DNA of 64,000 nucleotides from Hydrolagus colliei (Eukaryota), in assembly GCA_035084275.1 (NCBI GenBank), contig CM068742.1:154690001-154754000 (forward strand). The letters run 5' to 3'. Made by a program: the position numbers and the translations under genes. Below are positions 412-63,620 of this stretch, piece by piece (position 1 is the first letter of the stretch; each line of letters opens with the position of its first letter). The notes beneath the pieces were generated by a model. That model worked only from the letters and a program-made list of their open reading frames with translations. It did no database searches and was not told where the DNA came from.

Positions 412-703
412 GTGAGGAACGATGGGAAGTTGGAATGAGACGTGATGATCCTCACTGGTGCCGGAGTCAGTGGGAAGTGTCTCGCCCAGGACGGGCAATA
501 GGGAGCGAGTGTTCCCAGTGAAGGAAGGTGTGTAACAGGGGCTGGCAGGGACAGTGAGTGAGCGGCTGATGGGAGGGAGGGCTGTGCTGTACACTGACCT
601 GTCACTGTGGGAATGTCTATTTGCCAAGGCTCCTCACATGTGTGTAACATGTACTGTGTCACACTGACTGCGCTTCAGTATTCCAATCCTGTTCCTGTCT
701 CAG

Positions 704-1815: not shown

Positions 1816-1853
1816 CTCCGGCCGTCATCCTGACTCTGTCCCTTGTGGCTGGT
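1816..1853 (+). pseudogene. 38-bp stub of the C2/TM exon, fused to upstream-of-leader sequence
   Basis: Acceptor ccaaag|CTCCGGCCGTCATCCTGACTCTG matches 7789 onward. Homology stops at GTGGCTGGT, and an in-frame TAG follows after PQN. Confidence 0.85.
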
Positions 1854-2595: not shown

Positions 2596-2647
2596 ATGAT
2601 GCTGGGAGCTGTGCTCTGCGCCCTGGTCCTGTCAGCCTCTGCCTTAC
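2596..2647 (+). CDS. Gene A leader exon ([17 protein letters not shown], signal peptide)
   Basis: Hydrophobic 17-mer ending ASA-L. Phase-1 donor C|GTACGT fits the phase-1 V1 acceptor. Conserved upstream of every V1. Confidence 0.8.
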
Positions 2648-5600
2648 GTACGTACTTTCCAATCAGTAACTATAATAAGTGCTCACACACGATTGTCACC
2701 TCAATGCTCGATTCCGGCAACTCCCTCCTTGTCGGCCTCCCCAACTCTTCACTCCACAAGCTGCAGATAATCCCAAACTTTGCACCTCGTGTCCTCTCCC
2801 ACAACAGGCTCTGTGACCCTATCACTCCCACCCTCGCCCATATCCAGTGAGGAGATCTCAGAGGATTGAATTCCAGATTCACATACTCATGTACAAGACT
2901 CCCCACCCTCCTACCTCGCTGACCTGCTGATCCCCTCTCCAACTATCTGCTCTCTCCATTCAGCAAGCTCCGGCCTTCTCCATGTATCCCGTCTGACCCG
3001 CCCTTCCAACTTTGGTGGGCTTGCAGACCCTCTGCTCCTATGCTTTTTGGAACTCAATTGAATAATCCCTTCACCTTGCTCCCTAACTTGCCTTGTTTAT
3101 GGCTGGCCTCAAGCCCTTCCTTTTTGACTGTCCCTTCAGCTGCTATCCTGTCTCATGCCAACCCTGGCCACCCAACCCACCTCCCCCATACTTGAGTCCT
3201 GACCCATGACTGTTCAGCGCCTTGGGACGTCCTCCCAACATGAAAGGTGCTCTACACATGTGGTTGTTGTGGTTGTTTATCTTTTAGTGGCATGATTACA
3301 TGTGTAATGATTACAAGTGTGTGTTTGTTACCTCTGCCTCCGTTTGATTTCCCCAATCTCTCTCTGTCTTGTCTGTGTTACTTTTCGCTTGCCACTGGAG
3401 CTCTTTACTCTAAACTGATTCCCAAGTGTCAATACTAGTTAAACCGTATCAGTTACCCCCAAACCACATTCTGGGGTCCTCTTGCATTAGACACTTGGGT
3501 GACAACAAATGATGGTATTTTAATATTACACCCAGACCACAACAGCGTTTTTCTTTCCACAAGCCACCCATAGTAACCCCTCTGACCTGTCACTCCCCTT
3601 CCCCTTCACACTTAATATGCCTGCTCTTCAAACATCTATCCAATTCTCTTTGATAGACTTGACGGATGATGCATCAAATTCAGTTTGTGGCAGATAATTC
3701 CACAATTCCACCCATTCTGTGTAACGACAGGAAAACCAAAGTGTTTCCTTGTTAACTCTCTGCTTCTACTTTACCTAATTTAAGCCTTCATAATTCCTTT
3801 TTTGAGATGGTATTAGATGTGTTCTTCTTGAGACTATCTCTCTGGTCTATTTCCGGATCAGCTAAAATGTGTTGCTATTTCCCCTGTTGTGATCTGTTGC
3901 GACCTCTATCTGTTCGCCCCAAACCTTCTCTGTTCTTCAGCCACCAATCTCTCAAATCTCTCTTCAGATCTGAAACCCCTCATCTCTGGGAATGTGCCAA
4001 TAAACAAGCAATTTGTATTCCATTGCTGTTATTTCGTTCTTACAGAGAATCCCAAACTGTCTCAAAATTCCAAACCAAGCTCTTGTCCAAGCTCAGTGTT
4101 GCCTGTTTGATTTTATATTGTGTTCTGGTTCACATTACACCATGTGTGTCCTCACAGGGATCAGTGTGAATGGCTGGACAATGGAGACCCCTGATACAGT
4201 GACCGGCAGGTTAGGGTCACCAGTCATCGTGTACTGCAAGTTTGTTGAGCCGCACCCCAGATACACAGGCAACATCACCATCACGTGGAAGGGAGGCTGG
4301 ACTAGTCCTGTGTATTTTAAATATACAAACTATAGGCCAGATTCACAGGAAAAGTATCAAAATATCATTGATGTAAACGAGGGAGATCGATACCGAGTGA
4401 TTGGGAACCCGAGGAGGAACGACGCTACAATACAGATAAACCAGCTGAGGGGAGAGGACAATAAGAAGTGGTGCAACTGTCGTGTTCAGCTCCAGGGTGA
4501 GGATGGAATGTGTGAAACTGGCCCCGAAACACATCTGTATGTTACAGGTGAGGAACGATGGGAAGTGGGAATGAGACGTGATGATCCTCACTGGTGCTGG
4601 AGACATATTGTGAGGGTATAGATGTGTGGAACTCCCACTGGTTTAGATATTCTTAACAATGGTGACAGATTTCTCCATGTATAAGGCAAATGTCTGCCCA
4701 AATACAAGAGATTTTCTCCTTGGGTCATCACCAAAAATCCTTTATGTTTATCAGTCAATCATTTCATAACCATTGAGATCTTTGATCTGAGTAAACTGAC
4801 TGCAAAAGTGTCACTATATTTATAGTAACAAATAAAAATAATGATTGTAGTTCATATTACATCTGATTACATTTTCTTGATATAAAAGGAAGTGCTGACT
4901 AACCTCTATAGGACTTTGGTGAGGCCTCAGCTGGAATACTGTGTTCAATTCTGGTCACCACACTACAGAAAGGATGTGAAGGCATTGGAAAGGGTACAAC
5001 GAAGATTTACTAGGATGGTGCCAGGATTGAGGGACTTCAGCTATGAGGAGAGGCTAGATAGGCTAGGGTTATTCTCTCTGGAGCAGAGAAGATTGAGGGG
5101 AGACCTAATAGACATTTATAATATCATGAGGGGTTTCGACAGGGCAAATAGAGAAAAACTATTTCCACTCGTGGGTGAATCTGTGACTCGTGGTCACAGA
5201 TTTAAAATAGTTTCAAGGCGCAGTAGAGGGGAGCTGAGGAGAAATGTTTTCACTCAGCGAGTTGTTCGAATCTGGAATGCATTGCCTGAAAAGCTGGTGG
5301 AGGCTGATTCGATAACAACTTTTAAAAGGGAATTAGATCTTTATTTAGGGAGAACGGGTCTATTAGGCTATGGGGAACGGGCAGGGCAGTGGGATTGAAT
5401 CGCTCTTTTCAAAGAGCCGGCACAGACTAGATGGGCCGAATGGCCTCCTTTTGTGCCGTAAAATTCTATGATTCTATGATTCTTACAGATCAATAGATTA
5501 CTCTATGAAGTGAATTGACTGTATATTTTGTTGGCAAAATATGGTAGCCAATTGCACACAGCAGTTTCCCATAGATACTCGTGGATTGAGTAACCAAAGC

Positions 5601-8600
5601 TTTGTTTAAGGGATTATTACCAAGCAAAGAAATACGCCAATCGAAGAACACAATTGTTTCCTATGTACCCTTAGGTAAACAGACATGTGTGGACAAAGGA
5701 AAATTACCCAAGGTTTTTCCCTACCCATGAATCAAGCTCAGGTCCTCTATAGTATGAGGCAAGTGTTCTAAGTTACAAGGCTAATCAGTAAGAAGGTTGT
5801 TGGTGCTATTAAAAGCCAAAGTTTAATTAGTGAGACATTGCTGCCCACAATCTCAGAGAGGGTGAGTGAGGAGCACAGGCCTGAGGGAGATAGTGCCATG
5901 AAAAGCAGGAATATACAGGATGTGTAACATGTACTGTGTCTCACTGACTGCTCTGCACTATTCCAATCCTGTTCCTGTCTCAGGTCATGAAGAGAAGCTC
6001 CCGTCAGTGACTGGTACCAAGGGAGGTGATGCCACACTGCCCTGCTCCTTCATCAGGCCCAACACACACCTGAATCCTGCCACAGTCACAGTGATTTGGA
6101 GGAGAGGGAGGCCACACGGGCAGCCAGTTACTAATGACACTCTTGGCCTCACCGCCCGCTCCAACCCCAGGGAGTCAGAGACAGTGAATGAAGGAAATCG
6201 CCATAACCTGGTTGGGAATGTGAGGGTTGGAGACACTTCCCTGAGGATCAAGGATCTGGAGTTAAACGATACCGACCAGTATTTCTGTAACGTACACATC
6301 ATGTTTATCAATAGCGGAGAACAACAAGTTCATGTGACACAGGACACATCACGGCTGCTGGTTGTTGGTAAGAAATCTCTTGTCTCTGTGGGACATGGAA
6401 AGGGGTAAATGTCAATGTTCACGGGCGCATCATTACAGACTAGGTTTGTCTCATTCCTTACCCTGTGCCTCACGTGTTAATTAGCACAAGAAACATGTTA
6501 TGAAACAGCAGAACCTTTTCCCTGGGGGGAGGGATTCTTCTCACTTGCCTCCCGTTAACGCTGCAGCCAAAGTTAGGGTGATCCTAGCTGGACAAGCAGC
6601 CGGTATCTTGCCAATGACATGTGACGTAGTTGTCACAAGATCACAGGATTGGTCTGAATGAAGAAACCCCATCTAGTCATATACATACTGAACCCCCAAA
6701 TCACCCGCTAATCCCTACCAACCCCTCGCCCCCCAAAACATTGGTATCAAGCGGAATCTAAAAGTCTGTAATTGCTCTGCCTGAAGGGAAATTGGATAGA
6801 TACGTGAAAATGAAACATTTTCAGGGCTCTTTTGTAAGACTGGGATAGAATGACTAGTTGAGAGATCCTGTAGCTTGGAGCACTTGCCGTGGAACCCAGA
6901 GGACCTGGGTTAGATTATTGCGCTGGGGAAACCATTGGGCAAACTGCCTTACTCCAAACACGCGTTTACCCAGTAATGAGTGCGAATCCAGCTGTCAGTT
7001 GATTGGCAGGCAATTTTCTGGGGTAATAATCGCTTAAAGAAATATATTTAGAAAAAAAATGTGATCGATCAGTGCTGTGATTAAAAATTAGCTGCTGGGT
7101 TTTGCTCACAAAAATATACAGGTACAGTCAATTATCTTGACAGTATATTCTAATAATCTCTCCCCCAAAAAATACAATAGTAAAATTGGTCATTTCAATC
7201 CACAACTCTTCGTGGGACGCTGCTGTGCGCAATTGCCTGCCACGCTTTGCCCATAAGTATACAGTCAATTCACTTGATAGTACATTCTGTGAAGCACCTT
7301 GAGACATCTAGAAGACGTGAAAAGCACCTTATCAAAATGCAAGGATTATTTTTAATTATTATTTTGTGAAGCGGTTTTAGTCGTTGAGAAGATGTGAAAA
7401 CTTCTATATTAAATGCAATTATTATTATCATTACTAGTGATGATAGAAGTAGCAGTAAATACAAGGATGATTATATATTACAGCTCTTTCAAAGAACCGG
7501 TTACAGAGACGATGTTGCAAATGGCCTTCTTCCTGCTATAAGATTCTATGATATTAAAATGGAAATATTAAATATTTGGAGATGAACATTATAAACAAAA
7601 CAAAAATGGACAAGAAAAAAGCAGGCAATCAGATTAGAGCAGAAAACAACAACAACAAAATTACATTTGTATAGTGTCTTTCATGATGGCGGGCCATCTG
7701 AAGAACACCAGTGAGTAAGCGAGTACTAGTGGATATGACGGTGAAAGTAATTTAATTGGAATAACTCTGTGTTTCTTTATACCCAAAGCTCCGGCCGTCA
7801 TCCTGACTCTGTCCCTCGTGGCCAGTGATGGAGCCGGAGGTGGCATCGTGTGCACGGCTGAGGGGGAACCACCAGCCACCATCACATGGATCGACCCCCA
7901 GAATAACACGCTGCCCGTCAACACCCACACGTCAATCACACATATACCAGACATGTATCTAACCTTGGGGGAAATCTGGGACCTGAAGTTGAGGGGAACG
8001 TACCGCTGTGTAGCTGAGAACACACAGGGCAACGACACCCGAGACATCCTCGTCACTGCCCTACAGAGTGAGGTGGACAACGAGAGTGATGGGGACAACG
8101 AGAGTAATGGGGACAGTAATTTGTATGTCAGGGTCTCCATTGTGGTCATGCTTGTTCTGCTGATTGCCTTCATTGTCCATTGGGTAAAGAGAGGTAGGTG
8201 TTTACAGATGTAGTGATTATGTGGATTTGTGGATTCCTGTAGCTCAGTGGTCACTGAGTATTCGACTTACAAACATGAGACCTGCGTTCAATTCCAGGCA
8301 GGGTGAAACATTTGCCAAGTTTCCTTATTCCACACGCCTGATAATAATTATGACTGATTGTAGGATTTTGCTATGTGCAAGTGGCTGCCTCATTTAGCCC
8401 ACAAATATACAGCACAGGCAATTCACTTTACAGTATCTTCTGTGAAGCACTTTGAGACTTCTAGAAGATGTGAAAAGCGCTATCTCAAATGCAAGGATTA
8501 TTATTATTATTCCAAATGAGTCTAGCAGAGCCAATCGCTTCCTCAACTCTGACTCAGCAAATATTCTGCCATATACACACACTTGGCAACCACATCATCA

Positions 8601-9984
8601 TCATCATCATCGTAATAATAAACCTTGTATTTGGTATAGCGCTGTTCACATCCTATCGACCTCTCAAAGCGCTTCACTGAATATACTGTAAAGTGAATTG
8701 ACTGTATATTTGTGAGCAAATCACAGCAGCCAATTGCGCACAGCAGTGTCCCCACAAACAGTCGTGGATTGAAACGACCCATTTTATTATCGTGTTTTTT
8801 TCAGACGGATTATTATTAGGTTTGGAGTAAGAAAACTTGCTAGATTTCGCCCTGACCTGCCTAGATTCGAACACAGGTCTCTCCAACGTGGTCTCCCCAG
8901 CTTGCAAGACAAGTGCTGTAACCACTGAGCCACAGGAGCTCCACCTGGTTAATACTAAGCAGAAGGAGACAAAGAAAAATTCTTGCATTTGGTATTGCCA
9001 GCCGGTGGTATATCTGGCTTCCTGTTTAGTAACCATAGTTACATAACACAATAGGAAGAGAACAGTTTGCCACAAGCCTTTCACTGGAATAACGTACACA
9101 CTTATCAAACCAGCAAAACATCTAAAGCAATAACAAATGAAATAATGATTATTATGATGATTATTATCTCTCCCCTTGCTTTCGTCTCTTCAGGTGTCAG
9201 AGTTTTCCGCCAGCGTTCAGAGAGGTGAGTGTGTCTTTCTAATGCCTTTACCTTTCCATTGACATTCAAGTTGCAAAGGGCTATTGAGCACCATGTTTGG
9301 CAAGCTTCCTGCTTCTCTCTCCAGCTACGACCACCCTACCCATTGGGGCTTTGGCTTGCAGGATTAATAGGATGAGTATGAGGATTCCCTGACACCAGTG
9401 GCTGGTCTTCCCTTCCAATTCTTGCCAATGAGTAGACTGGCTTTGCTGCCACCAGCAGTGCCCCAGAATATTAGATACTCACCTGGCTCAGGAACAAGAC
9501 TGAAGACCCACAGATTGTTGGCTTGAATCTGACAATCTGTTTCCAATCATGTCACCTTGGAGCCAGAGAAGCCAAGGAAACACCGTGTAGCTTAATCTAG
9601 ACAAACACCATGCACACAATCCTGTGGCCAAGCTGAGGCTTGGACTCTTCAGACAAGAGGCTTTTGCCCTATGTTCTATGCCAACAATCCCTCAGTAAAC
9701 CCATGATAGTTTGTGGGGAAGTTGTTGTATGAGCATTGGCTGATGTCATTCACATAAAATACAAAGTCATTACACTTTACAGTAAATCCTGTGAAGTGCT
9801 ATAAGACGTCCTCCTGATGTGAAAGACATGGTATCAAATGTGAGGATTATTAACGATGAGGTTTATCTTCCATCCTCTATAAAATGTAAAATATAAAATA
9901 TAAAATGTTTTCTCTTTATTTTTTAGTCGTCAAATGGATTTGGTTGTTGACAATGACTTTGTTCAACCTCAGCTGCCTACATGA
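2596..9984 (+). CDS. SIGLEC15-like: Gene A: Siglec-15-like receptor, V1-V2-C2-TM(Arg)-short Tyr-free tail, about 439 aa, putative activating type
   Basis: Exons 2596-2647, 4158-4547, 5984-6367, 7789-8193, 9194-9224 and 9927-9984(TGA), all GT-AG and phase-compatible (1320 nt). The motifs PHPRY, GNPRRND, CRVQ and CTAEGEPP resemble Siglec-15 as recalled from memory (BLAST needed). Confidence 0.8.
2680..3276 (+). mobile_element. L2-clade LINE 3' fragment in the leader intron (paralogs ~17330-17935, ~22275-22870, ~39410-39990, ~58350-58970)
   Basis: Degenerate ORF2 C-terminus ([32 protein letters not shown]) and a 3' tail cgccttgggacgtcc...aaaggtgctctacacatgtggttgttg. Boundaries approximate. Confidence 0.7.
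4158..4547 (+). CDS. Gene A V1 exon (Siglec-type V-set domain, Arg retained)
   Basis: cacag|GG acceptor, ACAG|gtgagg donor, 390 nt open, CNCRVQ. Confidence 0.9.
4885..5483 (+). mobile_element. CR1 LINE 3' end (~600 bp), specific to gene A
   Basis: ORF 4892-5398 is the CR1 ORF2 C-terminus ([13 protein letters not shown]). (ATTCTATG)n tail. The empty site cttgatatacagatc is seen in gene B. Confidence 0.95.
5984..6367 (+). CDS. Gene A V2 exon (second V-set domain, no Arg after the F-strand Cys)
   Basis: 384 nt open, phase 1-1, YFCNVH. Confidence 0.9.
7789..8193 (+). CDS. Gene A C2-set + acidic stalk + transmembrane exon
   Basis: ccaaag|CT acceptor, AGAG|gtaggt donor. [10 protein letters not shown]...GTYRCVAEN...[25 protein letters not shown]. 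Confidence 0.9.
8234..8511 (+). mobile_element. tRNA-derived SINE (paralogs ~26669-26982, ~46703-47014)
   Basis: A box TAGCTCAGTGG, B box GTTCAATTCC, 3' tail aaatgcaagg(att)n. Confidence 0.8.
8594..8942 (-). mobile_element. tRNA-derived SINE (paralog ~27064-27415; absent from gene C)
   Basis: The reverse complement has GGAGCTCCTGTGGCTCAGTGG...GTGTTCGAATC and the same 3' tail family. Confidence 0.75.
9194..9224 (+). CDS. Gene A cytoplasmic exon 1 (31 nt)
   Basis: tcttcag|GTG...AGAG|gtgagt, phase 1-2, conserved in three copies. Confidence 0.8.
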
Positions 9985-9988
9985 GACG
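9927..9988 (+). CDS. Gene A cytoplasmic exon 2 with in-frame TGA at 9982-9984
   Basis: tttttag|TCG...GACG|gtaact, phase 2-1. The equivalent codon is GGA in gene C. Confidence 0.8.
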
Positions 9989-10104
9989 GTAACTGTTTTC
10001 CCTCGATTACCGATGGCACAATTTTCACCCCGTGCTTTCACTAACCCAGGGCTGTGTCTCAGCTTTGCTCAGTCAGTGACACTCTCACCTCTGGCTCTGG
10101 GTGT

Positions 10105-10565
10105 CTGACCTTCAAATCCCTCCACTCATCTGCACCCCGCTACCTGTCTAAACTCCTCTCTCCTCAAACCAGTTCCCGTTGGGACATTTCAGCGTTTCAG
10201 CGCCTTGGGACGTCCTCCCGACGTAAAAGGCGCTCTATAAATGTAAAATGTTGTTGTTGTTGTTGTTGTTGCCTTCGCTCCACTGGGTCTGGCCTCCTTC
10301 ATGTCCTGTGAATCCTACGCTCCACCCTCGGCGGCCGTGCCTTCAGCCACTATGCCCCAATGCTCTGGAATTCCCTTCCTCACTCCCTTCATCTCGACCC
10401 CTCTTTTCTCAGTTTCAGGTCCCAGCTGAAGACCTTTCTCTTCGACCGTGCCTTTGGTCACCTTTCTCCTGCCCCTGGCTCGGTTCCGCGGTCCACTATT
10501 GTGAATTGCTCTGAGACGCCGTCCGTCGTGGAGGGCCCAATATAAATCAAAGCTGTTGTTGTTGT
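10105..10565 (+). mobile_element. L2-type 3' fragments occupying the site of the region deleted in genes A/B (paralog ~28559-28930)
   Basis: L2-like 3' sequence (gctgaagacctttctcttcgaccgtgcc) with (TGT)n tails. Boundaries approximate. Confidence 0.6.
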
Positions 10566-11366: not shown

Positions 11367-11405
11367 ACGTGCACGGAAATTCTACCATCAGAACCGTCGA
11401 TGACA
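11367..11405 (+). pseudogene. Gene A tail exon 5, downstream of the stop (YGN->HGN)
   Basis: cttcag|AC...GACA|gtgagt, paralog of 53318-53356. Confidence 0.7.
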
Positions 11406-12011: not shown

Positions 12012-12064
12012 ATGTGATTTATGCTGTTGTCTCCAAATCGAAGAGGAGCTCAGCTGAGCAGTGA
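12012..12064 (+). pseudogene. Gene A terminal exon with untranslated ITIM relic (VIYAVV)
   Basis: ttctag|ATGTGATTTATGCTGTTGTC...TGA, paralog of 53955-54007. Confidence 0.75.
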
Positions 12065-21949: not shown

Positions 21950-24900
21950 ATGATGCTGGGAGCTGTGCTCTGTGCCCTGGTCCTGTCAGCCTCTGCCTTA
22001 CGTACGTACTTTCCAATCAGTAACTATAATTAATAATAATAATCAATAATAATAATCCATCCAAAAAAAAACCACAATAATAAAATTGGTGATTCACTCC
22101 ACGACTGTTGGTGGGACACTGCTGTGCATAATTGGCTGCCGGGATTTGCCCACAAATATATAGTCAATTCACTTTACAGTATATTCTGTGAAGCGCTTTG
22201 GGACGTAGATAAGATGTGAAAAGCGCTGTATCAAATGCAAGGATTCTTCTTCTTATTATTATAATAATAAATGCTCACACGCGATTGTCACCTCAATGTT
22301 CGGCTCCGGCAACTCCCTCCTTGTCGGCCTCCCCAACTCTTCCCTCCACAAGCTGCAGATAATCCCAAACTTTGCACCTCGTGTCCTCTCCCACACCAGG
22401 CTCTGCGACCCTGTCACCCCCACCCTCGCCCGTATCCAGTGAGGAGATCTCAGAGGATTGAATTCCAGATTCACATACTCATGTACAAGACTCCCCACCC
22501 TCCTACCTCGCTGACCTGCTGATCCCCTCTCCACCTATCTGCTCTCTCCATTCAGCAAGCTCCGGCCTTCTCCATGTATCCCGCCTGACCCGCTCTTCCA
22601 ACTTTGGTGGGCTTGCAGACCCTCTGCTCCTATGCTTTTTGGAACTCAATTGAATAATCCCTTCACCTTGCTCCCTAACTTGCCTTGTTTATGGCTGGCC
22701 TCAAGCCCTTCCTTTTTGATTGTCCCTTCAGCTGCTATCCTGTCTCATGCCAACCCTGGCCACCCAACCCACCTCCCCCATACTTGAGTCCTGACCCATG
22801 ACTGTTCAGTGCCTTGGGACGTCCTCCCAACATGAAAGGTGCTCTACACATGTGGTTGTTGTGGTTGTTTATCTTTTAGTGGCATGATTACATGTGTAAT
22901 GATTACAAGTGTGTGTTTGTTAACTCTGCCTCCGTTTGATTTCCCCAATCTCTCTCTGTCTTGTCTGTGTTACTTTTCGCTTGCCACTGGAGCTCTTTAC
23001 TCTAAACTGATTCCCAAGTGTCAGTACTAGTTAAACCGTATCAGTTACCCCCAAACCACATTCTGGGGTCCTCTTGCATCAGACACCTGGGTGACAACAA
23101 ATGATGGTATTTTTATATTACACCCAGACCACAACAGCGTTTTTCTTTCCACAAGCCACCCATAGTAACCCCTCTGACCTGTCACTCTTCTTCCCCCTCA
23201 CTCTTAATATGCCTGCTCTTCAAACATTTATCCAATTCTCTTTGATAGACTTGACGGATGATGCATGAAATCCAGTTTGTGGCAGATAATTCCACAATTC
23301 CACCCATTCTGTGTAATGATAGGAAACCAAAGTGTTTCCTTGTTAACTCTGCTTCTACGTTACCTGTTTAAGATCCTCATAATTCCTTTTTTGAGATGGT
23401 GTTAGATGTGTTCTTCTTGAGACTGTCTCTCTGGTCTATTTCCAGATCTGCTAAAATTTGTTGCTATTTCCCCTGTTGTGATCTGTTGTGATATCTGGTC
23501 GCCCCAAACCTTCTCCGTTCTTCAGCCACCAATCTCTCAAATCTCTCTTCAGATCTGAAACCCCTCATCTCTGGGAATGTGCCAATCAACTAGCAATTTG
23601 TTTTCCATTGCTGTTATTTCGTTCTTAGAGAGAATCCCAAACTGTTTCAAAATTCCAAACCAAGCTCTTGTCCAAGCTCAGTGTTGCCTGTTTGCTTTTA
23701 TATTGTGTTCTGGTTCACATTACACCATGTGTGTCCTCACAGGGATCAGTAAGAATGGCTGGACAATGGAGATCCCTGATACAGTGACTGGCAGGTTAGG
23801 GTCATCAGTCATCATGTACTGCAAGTTCACTCACCCTCACCCCAGATACACAGGCAACATCACCATCATGTCGAAGGGAGGCTGGTCTGGTCCTGTGTAT
23901 TTTAATTATACAAACTATAGGCCAGATTCACAGGGAAAGTATCAAAATGTCATTGATGTAAACGAGAGAGATCGATATCGAGTGATTGGGAACCCGAGGA
24001 GGAATGACGCTACAATACAGATAAACCAGCTGAGGGCAGAGGACAATAATAAAAAATTCTCCTGTCGTGTGGAGCTCCAGGGTGAGAATGGAAGGGGTGA
24101 AACTGGCCCGAGAACACGTCTGTATGTTACAGGTGAGGAAAGATGAAGTGGGAATGAGACGTGATGATCCTCACTGGTGCTGGAGACATATTGTGAGGGT
24201 ATAGATGTGTGGAACTCTCACTGGTTTAGATATTCTTAACAATGGTGACAGATTTCTCCATGTATAAGGCAAATGTCTGCCCAAATACAAGAGATTTTCT
24301 CCTTGGGTCATCACCAAACATCCTCCATGTTTATCAGTCAATCATTTCATAACCATTGAGATCTTTGATCTGAGTAAACTGACTGCAAAAGTGTAAACTA
24401 TATTTATAGTAACAAATAAAAATAATTATTGTAGTTCATATTACATCTGATTACATTTTCTTGATATACAGATCAATAGAATACTCTATGAAGTGAATTG
24501 ACAGTATATTTTGTTGGCAAAATATGGTAGACAATTGCACACAGCAGTTTCCCATAGATGCTCGTGGATTGAGTAACCAAAGCTTTGTTTAAGGGATTAT
24601 TACCAAGCAAAGAAATACGCCAATCGAGGAAAACAATGGTTTCCTATGTACCCTTAGGTAAACAGACATGTGTGGACAAAGGAAAATTACCCAAAGTTTT
24701 TCCCTACCCATGAATCAAGCTCAAGTCCTCTATATTATGAGGCAAGTGTTCTAAGCTACAAGACTTATCAGTAAGAAGGTTATTGGTGCTATTAAAAGCC
24801 AAAGTTTAATTAGTGAGACATTGCTGCCCACAATCTCAGAGAGGGTGAGTGAGGAGCACAGGCCTGAGGGAGATAGTGCCATGAAAAGCAGGAATATACA

Positions 24901-27900
24901 GGATGTGTAACATGTACTGTGTCTCACTGACTGCTCTGCACTATTCCAATCCTGTTCCTGTCTCAGGTCATGAAGAGAAGCTCCCGTCAGTGACTGGTAC
25001 CAAGGGAGGTGATGCCACACTGCCCTGCTCCTTCACCAGGCCCAACACACACCTGAATCCTGCCACAGTCACAGTGATTTGGAGGAGAGGGAGGCCACAA
25101 GGGCAGCCAGTTTCTAATGATACTCTTGACCTCACCTCCCGCTCCAACCCCAGGGAGTCAGAGACAGTGAATGAAGGAAATCGCTATAACCTGATTGGGA
25201 ATGTGAGGGATGGAGACGCTTCCCTGAGGATCAAGGACCTGGAGTTAAACAACAACGACCAATATTTCTGTCATGTACACGTCATGTTTATCAATAACGA
25301 AAAACAACTGGACCATGTGACACAGGACACATCACGGCTGCTGGTTGTTGGTAAGAAATCTCTTGTCTCTGTGGGACATGGAAAGGGGTAAATGTCAATG
25401 TTCACGGGCGCATCATTACAGACTAGGTTTGTCTCATTCCTTACCCTGTGCCTCACGTGTTAATTAGCACAAGAAACATGTTATGAAACAGCGGAACCTT
25501 TTCCCTGGGGGGAGGGATTCTTCTCACTTGCCTCCCGTTAACGCTGCAGCCAAAGTTAGGGTGATCCTAGCTGGACAAGCAGCCGGTATCTTGCCAATGA
25601 CATGTGACGTAGTTGTCACAAGATCACAGGATTGGTCTGAATGAAGAAACCCCATCTAATCTTATCCTTACTGAACCCCCCAATCACCCCCTAATCCCTA
25701 CCAACCCCTCGCCCCCCAATACATTGGTATCAAGCGGAGTCTAAAAGTCTGTAATTGCTCTGCCTGAAGGGAAATTGGATAGATACGTAAACAGGAAACA
25801 TTTTCAGGGCTCTGGGGTAAGAGTGGGATAGAATGACTAGTTGAGAGATCCTGTAGCTTGGAGCACTTGCCGTACAAGCCCGAGGACCTGGGTTAGATTT
25901 TTGCGCTGGGGAAACCATTGTGGGCAAACTTCCTTACTCCAAACACGTGTTTACCCAGGAATGAGTGTGAATCCAGCTGTTAGTTCATTGGCAGGTAATT
26001 TTCTGGGGTAATAATAGCTTAAAGAAAAAAGAAAAAAGCAGGCAATGAGATTTGAGCATAAAACCAACAACAGCAAAATTACATTTGTATAGTGTCTTTT
26101 ATGTTGGGGGGCCATCTGAAGAACACCAGTGAGTAAGCGAGTACCAGCGGATATGACAGGAAAATTTATTTAATCAGAATAACTCTGTGTTTCTTTATAC
26201 CCAAAGCTCCGGCCGTCATCCTGACTATGTCCATCGTGGCTGGTGATGGAGCCGGAGGTGGCATCGTGTGCACGGCTGAGGGGGAACCACCAGCCACCAT
26301 CACATGGATCGACCCCCAGAATAACACGCTGCCCGTCAACACCCACACGTCAATCACACATATACCAGACATGTATCTAACCTTGGGGGAAATCTGGGAC
26401 CTGAGGCTGTGGGGAACTTACCGCTGTGTAGCTGAGAACACACAGGGCAGTGACACCCGAGACATCCTCGTCACTGCCCTAAAGAGTCATGGGGACAGGG
26501 AGAGTGACAGGGACAAGGAGAGTGACGGGGACAAGGAGAGTGATGGGCACAGTAATTTATATGTCAAGGTCCCCATTGTGGTGCTGGTTGTTCTGCTGAT
26601 TGCTTTCATTGTCCATTGGGTAAAGAGAGGTAGGTGTTTACAGATGTAATGATTATGTGGATTTGTGGATTCCTGTAGCTCAGTGGTCACTGAGTATTCG
26701 ACTTACAAACATGAGACCTGCGTTCAATTCCAGGCAGGGTGAAACATTTGCCAAGTTTCCTTATTCCACACGCCTGATAATAATCACTCAAATAATCAAT
26801 AATAAATTGGTCATTTCAATCCATGTCTGTTTGTGGGCATTTTGCTATGTGCAAATGGCTGCCTCATTTAGCCCACAAATATACAGTGCAGACAATTCAC
26901 TTTACAGTATATTATGTGAAGCACTTTGAGACTTCTAGAAGATGTGAAAAGCGCTATCTCAAATGCAAGGATTATTATTATTCCAAATGAGTCTAGCACA
27001 GCCAATCGCTCCCTCATCTCTGACTCAGCAAAAATTCTGCCATATACACACACTTGGAAACCACATCATCATCATCATCATCCTAATAATAAACCTTGCA
27101 TTTGATACAGCGCTGTTCACATCTTATCGACGTCTCAAAGCGCTTCACTGAATATACTGTAAAGTGAATTGACTGTATATTTGTGAGCAAATCGCAGCAG
27201 CCAATTGCGCACAGCAGTGTCCCCACAAACAGTCATGGATTGAAATGACCCATTTTATTACCGTGGTTTTTTCGGACGGATTAGCATTAGGTGTGGAGTA
27301 AGGAAACTTGCTGAAGATTTCGCCCTGACCTGCCTGGATTCGAACACAGGTCTCTCCAGCTTGGTCTTCCCAGCTTGCAAGACATGTGCTCTAACCACTC
27401 AGCCACAGGAGCTCCACCTGGTTAAAAATAAGCAGAAGGAGATGAAGAAAAATTATTGCATTGGTATTGCCAGTCGGTGGTATATCTGGCTTCCTGTATA
27501 GTTACATAATACAATAGGAAGAGAACAGTTTGCCACAACTGCTTTCACTGGAATAACGTACACACTTACCAAACCAGCAAAACATCTACAGCAACATCAA
27601 GTGAAATAATGATTATTATTATGATTCTTATCTCTCCCCTTGCTTTCGTCTCTTCAGGTGTCAGAGTTTTCCGCCAGCGTTCAGAGAGGTGAGTGTGTCT
27701 TTCTAATGCCTTTACCTTTCCATTGACATTCAAGTTGCAAATGGCTATTGAGCACCATGTCTGGCAAGCTTCCTGCTTCTCTCTCCAGCTACGACCACCC
27801 TACCCATTGGGGCTTTGGCTTGCAGGGTTAATAGGATGAGTATGAGGATTCCCTGACACCAGTGGCTGGTCTTCCCTTCCAATTCTTGCCAATGAGTAGA

Positions 27901-28438
27901 CTGGCTTTGCTGTCACCAGCAGTGCCCTAGAATATTAGATACTCACCTGGCTCAGGAACAAGACTGAAGACCCACAGATTGTTGGCTTGAATCTGACATT
28001 CTGTTTCCAAACATGTCACCTTGGAGCCAGAGAAGCCAAGGAAACACCGTGTAGCTTAATCTAGACAAACAATCCTGTGGCCAAGCTGAGGCTTGGACTC
28101 TTCAGACAAGAGGCTTTTGCCCTATGTTCTATGCCAACAATCACCTCAGTAAACCCATGATAGTTTGTGGGGAAGTTGTTGTATGAGCATTGGCTGATGT
28201 CATTCTCATAAAATACAAAGTCATTACACTTTACAGTAAATCCTGTGAAGTGCTATAAGATGTCCTCCTGATGTGAAAGACATGGTATCAAATGTGAGGA
28301 TTATTAACGATGAGGTTTATCTTCCATCCTCTATAAAATGTAAAATATAAAATATAAAATGTTTTCTCTTTATTTTTTAGTCGTCAAATGGATTTGGTTG
28401 TTGACAACGATTTGGTTCAACCTCAGCTGCCTACATGA
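21950..28438 (+). CDS. SIGLEC15-like: Gene B: Siglec-15-like receptor, V1-V2-C2-TM(Lys)-short Tyr-free tail, about 445 aa, putative activating type
   Basis: Exons 21950-22001, 23743-24132, 24967-25350, 26207-26629, 27658-27688 and 28381-28438(TGA), 1338 nt open. The V1 C-strand Trp is replaced by Ser. Confidence 0.78.
23743..24132 (+). CDS. Gene B V1 exon
   Basis: 390 nt open, KFSCRVE. TCG (Ser) at 23871 replaces the conserved TGG. Confidence 0.9.
24967..25350 (+). CDS. Gene B V2 exon
   Basis: 384 nt open, YFCHVH. Confidence 0.9.
26207..26629 (+). CDS. Gene B C2/stalk/TM exon
   Basis: 423 nt open, [25 protein letters not shown]. Confidence 0.9.
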
Positions 28439-29724
28439 GACGGTAACTGTTTTCCCTCGATTACCGATGGCACAATTTTCACCCCGTGCTTTCACTAACC
28501 CAGGGCTGTGTCTCAGCTTTGCTCAGTCAGTGACACTCTCACCTCTGGCTCTGGGTGTCTGACCTTCAAATCCCTCCACTCCTCTGCACCCCCCTACCTG
28601 TCTAAACTCCTCTCTCCTCGAACCAGTTCCCGTTGCCTTCGCTCCACTGGGTCTGGCCTCCTTCATGTCCCGTGAATCCTCCGCTCCACCGTCGGCAGCC
28701 GTGCCTTCAGCCACTATGCCCCAAGGCTCTGGAATTCCCTTCCTCACTCCCTTCGCCTCGCCCCCTCTTTTCTCAGTTTCAGGTCCCAGCTGAAGACCTT
28801 TCTCTTCGACCGTGCCTTTGGTCACCTTTCTCCTGCCCCTGGCTCGGTTCCGGGGTCCACTATTGTGAATTGCTCTGAGACGCCGTCCGTCGCGGAGGGC
28901 CCAATATAAATCAAAGCTGTTGTTGTTGTTGTACTATATATACTGTACGATTTTGTTTTTTGTTGTTGGGAGGGCGTCCTTGAAGTGCAGTGTTAGAAAA
29001 GAGAAAGGAGTTTCTCTGGGTGTCCAGATTAAATTGTTTATCTACTTCATGGCTCTTTGTGGGTCCATATTGATTATCGCATTCGACAACAATAACAAAA
29101 ACAACAACAAAATTACATATGTGTGGCGCCTTTCACGTCAGGAGGACATCCCATGGTGCTGGACAGTTACTGCTTCAGACCTGAGCAGAGCACAGGTCTG
29201 GGCGGGGGGGGAAGGAGTTGTCGGTGAGTCTATCGAAGAGGAGATTCTTGAATCGAGACTTGAAAGAGTACAGTCGGGGGGCGAGGCCGAGGATCTTCGG
29301 GATGGTGTTCCAGAGGTTGGGGTCAGAGTGATTGAAGGCTCAACAAATCCAGTCGCAACATTACAAAGTGAATCCTGTCAAATGCTATCAGATGTACTAC
29401 GATATGTTTTGTCAATGTCATAGCACCACTTTGCTGTGTCCCTCAAATGTGAAATACATAATAAATTATTGCTGCTGTTGTTATTAAATCTAAATGGAAT
29501 AATATCCAGGCCCCAGGGCCTGGCATGTGGTTCCAATTCCCAGTTCATTCTGTGAATCCTTTGTCCGAGCTTTGGGGACTGCGCTTCAGACATTAAACCC
29601 ATATCTCTGGACATCCACATACACAGTACATACACACTCCATTTGATAACTAGTGTCATATTTCCTTTGTGAAGCCGATTTCCAATTGTTAATTATTTAC
29701 CAACATTGTCTGTCTCTCCTTCAG

Positions 29725-30422
29725 AATTGTACGGAGATTCTACCATCAGAACCGTCGATGACAGTGAGTGTTGTCTACCTTTTCTGGTTTATTGTTTATC
29801 CTGTCTCTTCTCCGCTCGCACTCTGGCTCTGGGTCAGGAGGAGGGGTATTGAAGCCTCTACGTTGGGGAATTTGAGGTCACACAGTCCAGGCTGATGCTC
29901 CAGTGCAGCAATGGGGAGAGCGCTGCATTGTCAGAAGTGCTGTCCTTTGAATGCGATATTAAACTGAGATCAAGTCCGTGTCTGATGAAGTTGTTTTGGT
30001 CTGCCACGTGCAGAAACACATCTGTTTGTCAAGAGGATCAAAACTTGACTGAGAGTTCCTGTCACCTGTACATCTGGAATGCAATGTGCTGTTGAGAAGG
30101 GAATTTATCTCTCCTTGTGTCCTGGCCATCATTGTTTCAAATAAAATTGGTTGCTCACTTCATGGCTATTTGTTGGACATTTCAAACACAAATTGGGCAC
30201 CAGGTTTGCTGGTAAAATACACATTCACTACAATGGACTGTTTTTCTTTGAGATATATGGACTTTATATTAATATGAGGTTTCGAGTGACTTTAAGTTGG
30301 TCACACAGTGTATCACAGCTCTCAGCAAGTGGAGGTACATGTCCTGACTCCATTTTGTTTCTCTTCTAGATGTGATTTATGCTGTCGTCGCCAAATCAAA
30401 GAGGAGCTCAGCTGAGCAGTGA
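29725..30422 (+). pseudogene. Gene B tail exons 5 (29725-29763) and 6 (30370-30422), downstream of the stop
   Basis: Splice sites intact. YGN->YGD. VIYAVV retained but untranslated. Confidence 0.7.
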
Positions 30423-39321: not shown

Positions 39322-42300
39322 ATGATGCTGGGAGCTGTGCTCTGCGCCCTGGTCCTGTCAGCCTCTGCCTTACGTACGTACTTTCCAATCAGTAACTATG
39401 ATAACTGCTCACACGCGATTGTCACCTCAATGCTCGACTCTGGCAACTCCCTCCTTGTCGGCCTCCCCAACTCTTCCCTCCACAAGCTGCAGATAATCCC
39501 AAACTTTGCAGCTCGTGTCCTCTCCCACAACAGGCTGTGTGACCCCCCCATCATCCCTGCCCTTGCCCGGCTCCACTGGCTCCTCGTCCCTCAGAGAATC
39601 GAATTGAAGATCTTCGTACTCACATCCCTCCTACCTCGCTGACCTGCTGATCTATCTGTTACCTCCGTTCAGCATACTCCAGCCTTCTCCATACCTCTAA
39701 CCCAGCCTGCCATTCCTTCTTTGGCGGGCTTTCAGACTCCCTGCTCCCACGCTTTGGAACTCTACCGCATAATCCCTCCAGCTTGCTTCCTTCCTTACCT
39801 CCTTCGAGGCTGGTCTCAAAACCCTCCTTTTTGACACGTCTCTTCAGCTACCGTCCTAACTCTCTCTGCCCACTCTCAATCCCAACCCTGGGTCCTGAGC
39901 CCACCTCCCCCATTCTTGGGTGAGGTGGGAACCTAGGGAACCTCTCCCTACAGGAAAGGCGCTCTACAAATGTGGTAGTTATTGCTGTTTATCTTTTAGT
40001 AGAATGTTTACCGAGTCAGGTGACATTTAGAAATAAGATTCTTGCTATATAAATCAAAGATGTTGTTGTTGTTGTTGTTGTTGTTGTTGTCTTTAACATT
40101 GACAGACCAGCCTCTGAGTGAGTTACTCACTGAGCCTCACAAGGCAAGTGTGTGTTTGTTAACTCTGCCTCCATTTGATTTCCCGAACCTCTCTCTGTTT
40201 TGTCTATGCTGCTTTTCGCTCCCCACTGGAGATCTTTACTCAAATTTGATTCCCAAGAGTTAGTATGAGGTAAACTATCTCTTACTCCCAACGCACATTC
40301 TGGAGTCCACAATACTTTTGTTTCATCCTGCATCAGACATCTGGTTGACAACAAATGATGGTATTTTTATAGTACACCCAGACCAGGATTTTTTTTTTTC
40401 CACAAGCCACCCATTCTAACCCTCTAACCCATCACTCCCCTTTCCCCACACCCTTAATATTCCTCCTCTTCAAACATCTATCCAATTCCCTTTGATAGAC
40501 TTGATGGACGATGCCTGAAATCCAGTTTGTGGCAGATAATTCCACAATTCCACTCATTCTGTGTAAAAACAGGGAAAACCAAAGTGTTTGTTAACTCTCT
40601 GCCTCTAGTTTAGATGTTTTAAGCTCCTCATAGTTCCTTTTTGGCGATGGTATTACATGCGTTCCTCTCGTGACTGTCTGACTGATCTATTGTCAGATCA
40701 GCTAAAATTGTTTGCTATTTCCCCTGTTGTGACTTGTTGTGACCTCTATCTGGTCGTCCCAAACCTTCTCAGTTCTTGAGCCACCAATCTCTCAAATCTC
40801 ACTTCAGATCTGAAACCCCTCATCTCTGGGAAAGTGCCAATAAACTAGGATACTAGGCTTTATAAATAGGGGCATAAAGTACAAAAGTCAGGAAATTCTG
40901 ACTAAACTCTACAAGACTTTGGTTAGGCCTCAGCTAGATTACTGTGTACTATTCTGGTCACCACACTTTAGGAAGGATGTTAAGGCTTTGGAAAAGGTGC
41001 AGAGGAGATTTACTAGGATGGTACCAGGAATGAGGGACTTCAGCTATGAGGAAAGGCTAGAGAGACTAGGTTTATTCTCATTGGAATAAAGAGGTTGCGA
41101 GGAGACCTAATAGAGGTTTATAAAATCATGAGGGGATTCGACAGGGTGAATAGGGAAAGACTGTGTCCACTGGTGGGCGAATCAGTGACTGGTGGTCACA
41201 GATTTAAAATAGTTTCAAAAAGAAGCAGAGGGGAGCTGAGGAGAAATGTTTTCACTCAGCGGGTTGTTGGAATCTGGAATGCATTGCCTGGAAAGGTGGT
41301 GGAGGTGATTCATTAACAACTTTTAAGTGAGGTAGACATATATTTGGGGTGGATGGGTTTGTGAGGTTATGGAGAGAGAGCTGGGGAGTGGGATTAAATT
41401 GCTCTTTTTAAAGTGCCGGCACAGACTCAATGGGCAGAATGGCCTCCTTTTGTGCCGTAAGATTCTTTGTATTTTTTTCATTGTTTTTATATCCTTTTTT
41501 ACAGGGATCCCCAAACTGTCTACAGTACTCCCAGCTGTGACCTAACCAAGCTCTTGTGCAAGCTCAGTGTTGCCTGTTTGCTTTTATATTGTGTTCTGGT
41601 TCACATTACACCATGTGTGTCCTCACAGGGATCAGTGTGAATGGCTGGACAATGGAGACCCTGATACAGTGACTGGCAGGTTAGGGTCACCAGTCATCAT
41701 GTACTGCAAGTTCACTCACCCTCACCCCAGATACACAGGCAACATCACCATCATGTGGAAGGGAGGCTGGGCTGGTCCTGTGTATTTTAAATATACAAAC
41801 TATAGGCTGGATTCACAAGGAAAGTATCAAAATGTCATTGATGTAAATGAGGGAGATCGACACCGAGTGATTGGGAACCCGAGGAAGAACGACGCTACAA
41901 TAAAGATAAACCAGCTGAGGGGAGAGGACACTAATAAGCTGTTCTCCTGTCGTGTGGAGCTCCAGGGTGAGGACGAAAATGTTGAAACTGGCCCCAGAAC
42001 ACGTCTATATGTTACAGGTGAGGAACGATGGGAAGTGGGAATCATTCCTGACTAGTGCCGGAGTCAGTGGGAAGTATCTCACCCAGCATGGGCAATACGC
42101 AGCTAGTGTTCCCAGTGAAGGGAGTTTGTATGAGTTTGTATCAGCCTAATTGACAGGACTTGGAAGTGCAGACTAGTCACTTGGGGCAGGGAATCCTCCC
42201 ACTCATCTTATTAACTGCACTGACCAGCTGGACAAACAATAGCAACTTGCATTTCTATAGCGCCCTTCACGCAGCGTTGTGTCTCAGAGGGCTTTGGGGC

Positions 42301-45300
42301 GCTATTCTGCATTCAGGGCACGATATAGGCACCCTAAACAGCAGGAAGCTTGCCATACAAGCTTGCCAGCTTGTCAATGGCAAACTATGCTGCGGAGTCT
42401 AGTGGTGAAGCAGTTAGAGTACTCGTTTCTCTTTATGTAACAACAACAACAAGTTACACTTATAAAGCGCCTTTCACGTCGGGAGGACGTCCCAAGGCGC
42501 TGCACAGGAGGCGTGTGACCCGAGCTGGGAGGGGAGTGTACGGGAAGGGGTGAAACAAGTAGGGGAGTTCGAAGAATTCGGGGTGGAACAAATATAATTG
42601 TATAATATACAATATATTCTGGTAAGTATATATACAGTATATTCTGCAAATGTTTTGAAATTAATAAATGATGTGACATGGTGCTATATCAAATACAAGT
42701 ATTATTATACTGTTTTAATTGGGTGAACTACCAACAGTTAATCCAACACATACACTGGGATCCTCAAACCTTGTACTAGTCAAAATGTGGATAATACTCT
42801 CTGAATTAGATACTCTGAGTGTATATATATCTACATATATATATGGAACTCTCACTAGTTAAGTTATTCTTAACAATGGTGACATATTTCAATACCACAC
42901 AAGAGATTTTCATGTATGTTGGTCATTCATTTCATAACCTTTGAGATCTCTGATTAGACTAAACTAACTGCGAAAGAGTCACTATAGCTATGTGTAACAA
43001 ATTCTTATATTTACTTTTACACTATCACATTTTCTACACATCTTAAAGCACTTTACAGAATACACTATAACGTGAATTGAATGTATCTTTTGTTGGCAAA
43101 CTACAGCAGCCAATTGCACAGAGTGCCTTCCCACAAACAGTGACAAAATCTTTGTTTGAAGAATTATTACCAAGCAAAGAAATACGCCAATCGAAGAAAA
43201 AATGGGTTCCTATGTACCCTTAGGTAAACAGAGGCATGTGGACTAAGGAAACCTACCCAAAATATTGCCCTTCCCAGGAATCAAACTCAGGTCCTCTATT
43301 TTGTGCGGCAAGTGCTCTAAGCTGCAGGACTTACCAGTAAGAATGTTATCGGTGCTATAAAAAGCCCACGTTTAATGTGTGAGATGGTGCTGCACACAAC
43401 ATCAGAGAGGAGCACAGGCATGAGGGAGATGGTGCCATGAAATGCAGAAATATACAGGATTTCACAGGGTGTAACATGTACTGTGTCACACTGACTGCTC
43501 TGCATTATTCCAATCCTCTTCCTGTCTCAGGTCATGAAGAGAAGCTCCCATCAGTGACTGGTACCAAGGGAGGTGATGCCACACTGCCCTGCTCCTTCAC
43601 CAGGCCCAACACATACCAGAATCCTAGCACAGTCACAGTGATTTGGAGGAGAGGGAGGCCAAAAGGGCAGCCACTTGCTAATGACACTCTTGACCTTTCC
43701 GCCCGCTCCGACCCCAGGGAGTCAGAGACAGTGAATGAAGGAAATCGCTATAACCTGGTCGGGAATGTAAGGGATGGAGATGCTTTCCTGAGGATCAGGG
43801 ACCTGGAGTTAAACGACACCGACCGGTATTTCTGTCACGTACACGTCATGTTTATCTATGGTGGGCACCAACAGGACCATGTGACACAGGACACGTCACG
43901 GCTGCTGGTTGTTGGTAAGAAATCTCTTGTCTCTGTGGGACATGGAAAGGGTGCAGTGGCATTGGTATCAATGCCACTTGCCATTGATACCAAGTGGCAT
44001 TGGTATCAATGGTATTGATACCAATACCATTGGTATTGGTATCAATACCAATGATACCAGTGGTATTGATACCAATACCAATACCGATTGGTATTGGTAT
44101 CGGTCCCAATACCAATCGGTATTGGGACCGATATTGGGGGATCGGTCCCAATACCGATCCCCCAGGGATCGGTATTGGGACCACTGCACTTTTTAATATA
44201 TATTAATGATCTGGACTTGGGTGTAGGGAGCACAGTTTCCAAGTTTGCAGATGATACTAAGTTAGGGAAAATAGTAAATAGTGAGAATAGTAAATAGTAA
44301 CCATCTGCAATAGGATATAGATAAAATGGTAAAGTGGGCAGGCACATGGCAGATGAAGTTTAATGCAGAGAAGTGCGAGGTGATACATTTGGGGAGAAGA
44401 AATGAGAGGAGGCAATATAGGCTAGAGAGTACAATTTTAAGGGGTGTGAGGGAACAGAGAGACCTTGGGATTTGTGTTAGTGACTCTTTGAAAGTGGCAG
44501 GACAGGTAGTCAAAGCTGTTGGATATGGGATACTAGGCTTTATAAATAGGGGTATAGAGTACAAAAGTCAGGAAGTGCTGACTAACCTCAACAGAACTTT
44601 GGTTAGGCCTTAGCTGGAGTATTGTGTCCAATTCTGGTCACCACATTTTAGAAAGGATGTTAAGGCATTGGAAAGGGTGCAAAGAAGGTTTACTAGAATG
44701 GTACCAGGATTGAGGAACTTCAGTTATGGGGAAAGGCTAGATAGGCTAGGTTTATTCTCTTTGGAACAGAGGAGGTTGAGAGGAGACCTAGTAGAGGTTT
44801 ATAAAATCATGAGGGGATTCGACAGGGTGAATAAGGAAAAACTGTTTCCACTTGTGGTCACAGATTTAAAATAGTTTAAAACGAAGCAGAGGGGATATGA
44901 GGAGAAATGTTTTCACTCAGCGGGTTGCTGGAATCTGGAATGCATTGCCTGAAAAGGTGGTGGAGGCCGCTTCCATAACAGCTTTTAAAGAGAATTAGAT
45001 CTTTAATAAGGGAGAACAGGTCTGTTAGGTTATGGGGAGAGAGCTGAGCAGTGGAATTGAGTTGCTCTTTTCAAAGAGCCTGCACAGACTAGATGGACTG
45101 AATGGCCTCCTTTTGTGCTGTAAAATTCCATGATCTTATGATTCTATGATTCCTTACCCTGTGCCTCACATGCTAATTAGCAGAAGAAACATGTATTTTA
45201 TTGGGGGGCATGGATTCTTCCCACATCTCCCATTAACCCTACAGACAAAGTTAGGGTGATCCTAGCTGGACAAGCAGCAGTATCTTGCCAATGACATGTA

Positions 45301-63614: not shown

Positions 63615-63620
63615 ATACAA

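Follow-up and report, generated by a model that had tools for sequence, protein, structure and literature searches.

A transmembrane arginine and a truncated tail in tandem Siglec-15-like genes of the chimaera Hydrolagus colliei: candidate activating derivatives of an ITIM-bearing receptor

A stretch of 64,000 nucleotides from the chimaera Hydrolagus colliei (GenBank assembly GCA_035084275.1, contig CM068742.1, positions 154,690,001 to 154,754,000 of the forward strand; hereafter the window, with coordinates counted from its first letter) carries a plus-strand, head-to-tail array of Siglec-15-like receptor genes with a unit length of ~19 kb, namely copies A, B and C and the start of a copy D. 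Judged from the sequence, the chances appear about even that copy A, and less surely copy B, is an activating-type derivative of an inhibitory receptor of the same family, one whose tail bore ITIMs (immunoreceptor tyrosine-based inhibitory motifs), and that its transmembrane (TM) Arg docks on an Asp-bearing dimer with ITAMs (immunoreceptor tyrosine-based activation motifs). The ancestral form, apparently still seen in copy C and among the relatives from Callorhinchus and sharks, would have been inhibitory, with Gly at TM position 4 and an ITIM-type tail of ~90 residues. In the common ancestor of A and B a GGA to TGA nonsense change in tail exon X2, loss of both tyrosine cassette exons and a CpG transition GGG to AGG would have produced a truncated receptor with an Arg about four residues into the TM helix; B would later have changed AGG to AAG. 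The Arg of copy A would pair with the aspartate pair of the ITAM-bearing dimer, and by depth and residue type a partner of the FcRgamma or CD3zeta type is more likely than one of the DAP12 type, if the mammalian receptors are a guide.

The genes are ordered leader, V1, V2, a single exon for the C2 domain, acidic stalk and TM, tail exons X1 and X2, in copy C only two 60-nt cassettes, and a last exon. Exons were mapped by tblastn with the Callorhinchus protein P0001 as guide and splice sites were then checked; those of the A and B models are all conserved. The exons that specify the TM and the tail are:

7789..8193, plus strand: copy A, C2 domain, acidic stalk and TM; TM ~8121-8186, Arg codon AGG at 8130-8132
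9194..9224, plus strand: copy A, tail exon X1, GVRVFRQRSE
9927..9988, plus strand: copy A, tail exon X2; premature TGA at 9982-9984, 4 nt before the exon end
12012..12064, plus strand: copy A, former last coding exon, now 3' of the stop
26207..26629, plus strand: copy B, C2 domain, stalk and TM; Lys codon AAG at 26566-26568, Pro two residues later
27658..27688, plus strand: copy B, tail exon X1, identical to that of A
28381..28442, plus strand: copy B, tail exon X2; premature TGA at 28436-28438, as in A
30370..30422, plus strand: copy B, former last coding exon, 3' of the stop
46205..46663, plus strand: copy C, C2 domain, stalk and TM; five GDRESD repeats; Gly codon GGG at 46600-46602, preceded by C (CpG)
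47345..47375, plus strand: copy C, tail exon X1
48581..48642, plus strand: copy C, tail exon X2; GGA at 48636-48638 where A and B have TGA
49101..49160, plus strand: copy C, cassette I1, phase 1-1; no counterpart in A or B
52120..52179, plus strand: copy C, cassette I2, phase 1-1, with the ITIM VIYSEV; no counterpart in A or B
53955..54007, plus strand: copy C, last exon, with the ITIM VIYAVV

The AGG, AAG and GGG codons of A, B and C occupy one aligned codon of the C2/stalk/TM exon, as an earlier note on this DNA had recorded; the protein reads ...SNLYVRVSIVV... there in copy A and ...SNLYVKVPIVV... in copy B. The S-N-L-Y-V-R/K context given in that note is found in A and B and fails in C, which reads S-N-V. 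The order of change that it proposed, GGG to AGG to AAG, is the parsimonious one: copy C, Callorhinchus P0001 and Heptranchias P0004 all have Gly at the site, both A and B carry the change at the first base, and only B carries that at the second. The two copies are sisters, their introns being 95.4% identical (4.6% divergence) and their C2/TM exons having 25 derived sites in common.

The two charged copies are also the two truncated ones, in agreement with the earlier note, both having the in-frame TGA in X2 at the codon where C retains GGA. The tails of A and B are 31 residues long, free of Tyr and end in ...VQPQLPT; that of C has ~90 residues and three Tyr motifs, of which VIYSEV and VIYAVV are canonical ITIMs and AIYSVV is the third. 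No counterpart or trace of the two Tyr-motif cassettes of C was found in A or B. Since C and Callorhinchus P0001 and P0153 all keep the cassettes, the long tail is the ancestral state. What used to be the last exon (DVIYAVV...) persists in A and B beyond the stop and is thus untranslated; a usable ITIM supplied by this retained exon was considered and rejected, as the in-frame TGA lies upstream. Because the stop lies 4 nt from the last exon junction, A and B transcripts should by the 50-55 nt rule escape nonsense-mediated decay. The short juxtamembrane exon X1 (10 codons) also differs between A/B and C: SCQH has become FRQR by three nonsynonymous and no synonymous changes, and two Arg have been gained on the cytoplasmic side of the truncated copies.

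The earlier note had named a position outside the bilayer as the outcome that would tell against an adaptor site; hydrophobicity scales and AlphaFold place the basic residue inside the predicted helix, near its outer end. It falls at position 3-5 of the best 19-23-residue hydrophobic windows (Kyte-Doolittle, Hessa, Wimley-White), with 18 apolar residues between it and the cytoplasmic KR anchor. The AlphaFold model of the C2/TM exon has one helix, S110-K134 (pLDDT 79-97), with the Arg as its sixth residue; this single-sequence model is poor for the immunoglobulin (Ig) part (mean pLDDT 56) and the helix segment alone was used. Counted from Leu112 the Arg of copy A is at TM position 4, i.e. at about position 4 of the predicted helix, and the TM pattern VxVSIVV(M/L)... 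has no central charge.

The rule by which such depth bears on the choice of adaptor, as invoked in the earlier note, is real: Arg at TM position 3-4 for FcRgamma as against Lys near position 9 for DAP12 (PMC1440944, PMC8102735). Feng, Call and Wucherpfennig described FcRgamma partners with an N-terminal TM Arg (position 3 in FcalphaRI) and DAP12 partners with a Lys near position 9, and found that a poly-Leu helix with one correctly placed basic residue suffices for adaptor assembly (PMC1440944); because a lone, well-placed basic residue is enough in such a helix, a single substitution can create coupling. Hasan and Walter set the Arg of KIR2DL4 at position 4 against the FcRgamma Asp at position 3 (PMC8102735). 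Two details of the earlier note have to be dropped. The N-L-x-R context attributed to FcRgamma-coupled receptors is here N-L-Y-V-R, i.e. N-L-x-x-R and one residue longer, C has N-V, and the flanks are in any case dispensable (PMC1440944). Arg and Lys had also been treated alike for FcRgamma, and R3K in FcalphaRI greatly reduced assembly, similar to KIR K9R with DAP12 (drop to 15%) (PMC1440944). As read from the sequence, copy A conforms to the FcRgamma-type rule in both residue and depth, and copy B, with Lys, fails the residue rule. A word-indexed search with human FcRgamma as query returned tetrapod matches only and is uninformative on chimaeras.

A full HMMER scan that took the C2/TM exon of A as query recovered relatives in other cartilaginous fishes, among them family members that a first search had missed. 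The batoid evidence consists of automatic gene models. In three of these proteins, from Hemitrygon (XP_072903745, P0260), Pristis (XP_051876576) and Rhinoraja (XP_078286866), an Arg precedes the cytoplasmic anchor by 18-20 residues and the tail, of 29-39 residues, is free of ITIMs, and the Hemitrygon locus confirms the terminal exons and stop of P0260. A fused Mobula model (XP_072113536) contains in its first half an Arg-type gene, directly upstream of an Arg-less paralogue with a long Tyr-bearing tail. Tails of 76-150 residues with Tyr are found in the charge-less members, i.e. copy C, P0001, P0153, the Heptranchias and Heterodontus proteins and the second Mobula gene; in one Scyliorhinus model both the charge and a long tail are absent. 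Across the family charge and short tail are associated at Fisher P = 0.015 when proteins are counted and 0.048 when lineages are.

The batoid Arg-type genes thus belong to the same family and match copy A in Arg depth and in the short ITIM-free tail, but their TM sequences differ (AIRAAIY, LARYIVF), and their origin is independent of, or older than, the chimaera event. Because these TMs differ and the chimaera Arg arose recently from Gly, the pairing of charge and short tail arose at least twice in the family, and this recurrence is the strongest argument that the pairing is functional. In the locus of the stingray Hemitrygon akajei (CM108218.1) the P0260 exons enclose a further C2/TM exon (...SALAIRAATYVVY...; 10765-11063), which belongs to the other Arg type and is apparently unused, and both Arg-bearing TM types coexist there in one locus.

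The ectodomains relate these genes to Siglec-15. In the database they come closest to proteins of Callorhinchus milii (73-78% identity) and next to proteins from sharks, rays and frogs that bear the name Siglec-15; among solved structures the best relative is human Siglec-15 (7zoz), with a match over V2 and C2 at E = 5.6e-21, frog Siglec-15 matches at E ~1e-18, and the Pfam matches are to V-set and Ig_3/I-set. A protein search with only the stalk, TM and tail of A gave no match (no shared 5-mers). Like their relatives in sharks and Callorhinchus, the genes have V1, V2 and C2 as three Ig exons, vs two domains (one V, one C2) in orthodox Siglec-15. The F-strand sialic-acid-binding Arg (human YFCRVE) is kept in V1 (FSCRVEL in B and C, CNCRVQL in A). 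V2 (5984-6367, 24967-25350 and 43531-43914) aligns best to the human V domain, yet has Asn or His in the Arg column (YFCNVH, YFCHVH).

Orthodox Siglec-15, which is DAP12-coupled and extends from mammals to sharks, is homologous to the window genes in its V-set and C2 domains; its central TM Lys (IPLIKFLLLL in sharks, MPAAKCLF in Callorhinchus) and short tail form a different TM/tail module, and the window genes have an additional V domain. A search of the window for a central-Lys TM exon gave spurious minus-strand matches only. By these sequence features, no central TM Lys and an extra V domain, the window genes are classed as relatives of Siglec-15 and not as orthodox Siglec-15. The conserved central-Lys Siglec-15 of sharks, rays and Callorhinchus implies at least a DAP12-like partner in the group. 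The window differs from the C. milii locus on MU249832.1 with which it was compared, exons being 85-87% and introns 65-80% identical. At 137747800-137788011 of that sequence the ITIM-tailed P0153, with Met at the TM site, lies between two central-Lys Siglec-15-like genes, and because of this position inhibitory and DAP12-type members are interleaved in one cluster.

Next to the membrane the stalk consists of an 18-bp tandem repeat encoding GDRESD-like units, at 46488-46574 in C (4.8 copies, 100% identical), 26479-26550 in B and 8070-8117 in A. The repeats of B and A are fewer and diverged, and the stalk is very acidic, variable in length and directly beside the Arg/Lys site.

Several observations weigh against an activating role for A and B. 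Because the two are sisters, charge and stop were inherited together, and their pairing in the window is a single event by shared descent; the co-variation of TM charge with tail type claimed in the earlier note thus does not stand within the window, and it does hold across the wider family at the Fisher values given above. With a C directly before the Gly codon (gtC Ggg), the change from GGG to AGG is a CpG transition; the codon is a mutational hotspot and, among the first seven of the TM, the only one a single step away from Lys or Arg. With a tenfold CpG rate this change makes up ~7% of all mutational input to the TM, and with about two TM substitutions expected the chance of a charge on the AB branch is ~0.02-0.13. 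The site also varies in the family (G, V, M, W, R, K). On simple scales the helix is still insertion-competent with the charge, and adaptor dependence is not forced; snorkelling of the basic residue is possible in the modelled helix, given its nearness to the outer boundary. In copy B the Lys would be disfavoured for FcRgamma if mammalian assays apply (PMC1440944), and a Pro occupies TM position 6. Within the window the pairing of charge and tail exceeds chance only weakly. A three-state TM codon had been considered statistically unusual in itself, and this was rejected, as 14 of the 457 aligned codons specify three different residues in A, B and C.

Such considerations are consistent with a reading that seems rather unlikely but substantial, in which A and B no longer signal: the stop codon would have deprived them of tail and inhibition and left decoys, ligand sinks or partners of a co-receptor kind, whose Arg or Lys is a tolerated interfacial residue, snorkels to the outer head-groups beside the very acidic stalk and binds no adaptor. 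The basic residue is only 3-5 positions from the helix end, the 18 apolar residues that follow nearly span the bilayer, and summed insertion scores are favourable even with the charge; free variation of the site among paralogues (G, V, M, W) and the high prior of a CpG transition point the same way, as does the poor fit of the B Lys to mammalian FcRgamma rules. The open frames of A and B equally fit a functional ectodomain. However, an inert residue does not readily account for the batoids, where Arg at the same depth recurs in short-tailed and not in long-tailed members, nor for the second hit in B, which kept the positive charge although only ~1 in 5 of the weighted nonsynonymous paths from AGG do so (genetic code, transition/transversion ratio 2); moreover published receptors with Arg at such depth are adaptor-coupled.

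The integrity of the copies bears both on the activating-type reading and on a further alternative, improbable on balance, that A and B, perhaps with C, are young pseudogenes of a birth-and-death cluster in which the nonsense codon common to A and B killed their ancestor and the TM change was neutral. Copy A is clean throughout, and A and B together have no frameshifts and no extra stops in 1317 nt. Their introns have accumulated 2.5 frameshifting indels per kb and 4.6% substitutions, from which ~3.3 frameshifting indels would be expected in neutral exons; the chance of no new stop under neutrality is 0.04-0.14, and the joint P for intact A and B frames since their split is ~0.005. This argues against decay, as do the conserved splice sites and a stop placed where mRNA decay is not expected, but gene conversion could have held the frames open without selection on A and B themselves, and the ratio of nonsynonymous to synonymous rates (dN/dS) between A and B, 0.71 (29 synonymous and 68 nonsynonymous changes), is not significantly below 1. 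Copy B has in addition lost the invariant Ig Trp of V1 to Ser (TGG to TCG, 23871-23873), where C and D read ITIMWKGG, A reads ITITWKGG and all relatives have Trp; to judge from the sequence this should destabilise the first V domain.

In copy C, V1 (41654-41665) reads CCC where A, B and D have CCCC, and with the normal leader donor the frame shifts after NGWTMET and then meets a stop; the frame would be recovered only from a weaker donor 4 nt downstream (39373-39381, GTACGTAC), with the conserved N-terminal strand replaced and its NGWxMExP start lost. The frameshift may reflect a pseudogene, an odd isoform or a homopolymer assembly error. It is among the points that favour loss of function, together with the clearly dead V1-V2-C2 fragments upstream of A and B and the 14 three-state codons among 457. 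Plain decay is, on the other hand, not what the divergence suggests: the exons of A and B differ more than their introns (7.1% vs 4.6%, and 10.3% in V1), which points to diversification or gene conversion. V1 of A is 10.3% from V1 of B, C and D alike, which differ mutually by 7-8% (4158-4547 vs 23743-24132, 41629-42017 and 59825-60211), and seven of the A changes fall within 24 nt (KFVEPHP vs KFTHPHP). The pattern suggests a diversifying change or burst in the putative ligand-binding domain, or gene conversion from an unseen paralogue; V1 divergence of this kind is usual for paired immune receptors.

The window has a vertebrate-like CpG observed/expected ratio of 0.38 and no N runs, and copies A, B, C and partial D, neighbours in tandem on one strand, share 90-93% exon identity. 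The units and the remaining exons are:

~1-19353, plus strand: unit A
19354 to ~38000, plus strand: unit B, ~95% identical to A
~38000-57200, plus strand: unit C, 80-85% identical
57238-64000, plus strand: unit D, start only; leader 58263-58314, V1 59825-60211 intact, then interrupted by long interspersed element (LINE) sequence before the window end
2596..2647, plus strand: copy A, leader, ending in phase 1; found by tblastn with Callorhinchus P0001 and by aligning the leaders
4158..4547, plus strand: copy A, V1 (V-set), intact; Siglec-type Arg kept in CNCRVQL
5984..6367, plus strand: copy A, V2 (V-set by Pfam); best match to the human Siglec-15 V domain (PDB 7zoz), Arg replaced by Asn
21950..22001, plus strand: copy B, leader
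23743..24132, plus strand: copy B, V1; invariant Ig Trp replaced by Ser (TCG 23871-23873)
24967..25350, plus strand: copy B, V2
39322..39373, plus strand: copy C, leader; use of another GT donor, 4 nt beyond, would put V1 back in frame
41629..42017, plus strand: copy C, V1; 1-nt deletion in a C run (CCC 41659-41661 vs CCCC in A, B and D)
43531..43914, plus strand: copy C, V2

The leaders of A and B each have upstream of them a partial gene copy that is dead (1-1859 and 19354-21213), with a frameshifted V1, an intact-looking V2 and a 15-residue C2 stub (1815-1859); the one in unit B also has a leader-like exon of its own before it (open reading frame 17242-17295). These V1-V2-C2 fragments are birth-and-death debris of the array.

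Repeats accompany the genes. The head of a tRNA-derived short interspersed element lies ~40 nt 3' of each TM exon (8233-8306, 26672-26745, 46703-46776), with minus-strand copies near 48107-48418 and 55666-56003; a tRNA gene after the TM exon was rejected, as ARAGORN found none and the Rfam tRNA score was 16 bits vs a threshold of 29. CR1-like LINE copies occur at 49570-51937 (plus), 35260-37514 (minus) and 60439-63715, with 3' fragments at 4887-5483, 40848-41469 and 44160-45149; they have reverse-transcriptase reading frames of up to 367 and 224 residues and 95-98% mutual identity. One lies between cassettes I1 and I2 of copy C, and the I1 flank also resembles LINE sequence, which hints that LINE-mediated rearrangement may have shaped the tail region.

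Taken at the level of sequence, the array has features expected of a paired-receptor set: neighbouring similar genes, a long-tailed member with ITIMs (albeit with the V1 frameshift of copy C), a truncated ITIM-free member and a basic residue in the predicted helix of the latter. A wider proposal, tentative and with chances somewhat short of even, is that cartilaginous-fish Siglec-15, instead of being one DAP12-coupled gene, is an expanded paired-receptor family in three formats, central-Lys, ITIM-tailed and outer-Arg short-tailed, with the last derived from the ITIM-tailed form at least twice (once in the chimaera, once or more in batoids). If true, this would place an inhibitory-to-activating switch with FcRgamma-type geometry near the base of the jawed vertebrates. 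If copy A works it would be a very clean two-step switch, made by a single CpG transition together with a single nonsense codon, and the literature searched describes no paired receptors for either this lineage or this receptor family, and the depth-to-adaptor rule and the evolutionary route would be common to jawed vertebrates; if it is not functional, the array represents the ordinary birth-and-death turnover of an immune gene cluster. Literature searches found no paper that ties Siglec-15 to Callorhinchus or reports a cartilaginous-fish expansion of this kind, and nothing specific on shark ITAM adaptors.

Among known systems the paired primate Siglecs (Siglec-5/14, Siglec-11/16) are encoded by neighbouring genes with near-identical ligand-binding domains; one partner has ITIMs, while its counterpart is short-tailed and has a basic residue in the TM. 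The activating partners are DAP12-coupled and are kept similar to the inhibitory ones by gene conversion. Unlike these, the activating-type copies of the chimaera appear to have arisen through point mutations in the TM and tail of the inhibitory gene itself. In FcalphaRI, KIR2DL4 and macaque KIR3DS the TM Arg is followed by 16-18 apolar residues, and the window genes are alike in this. These three receptors are FcRgamma-coupled with an Arg 3-4 residues into the TM, and copy A fits them in residue type and depth (PMC1440944, PMC8102735); there is, however, no TM homology, the spacing here is N-L-x-x-R, B has Lys, and the likeness is one of predicted features. The closest precedent for the route is that of the short-tailed activating KIR, which Abi-Rached and Parham (2005) derived from inhibitory KIR through a TM Lys and a stop codon removing the ITIM, both on one branch and then spread by tandem duplication (PMC2213150). 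The KIR have a central Lys (position 9) and DAP12, whereas the window genes, known from sequence, have an Arg or Lys at about position 4, a Siglec-15-like ectodomain and a chimaera host. The inhibitory-to-activating route is thus already known, and what is probably new is its instance in chimaera Siglec-15-like genes.

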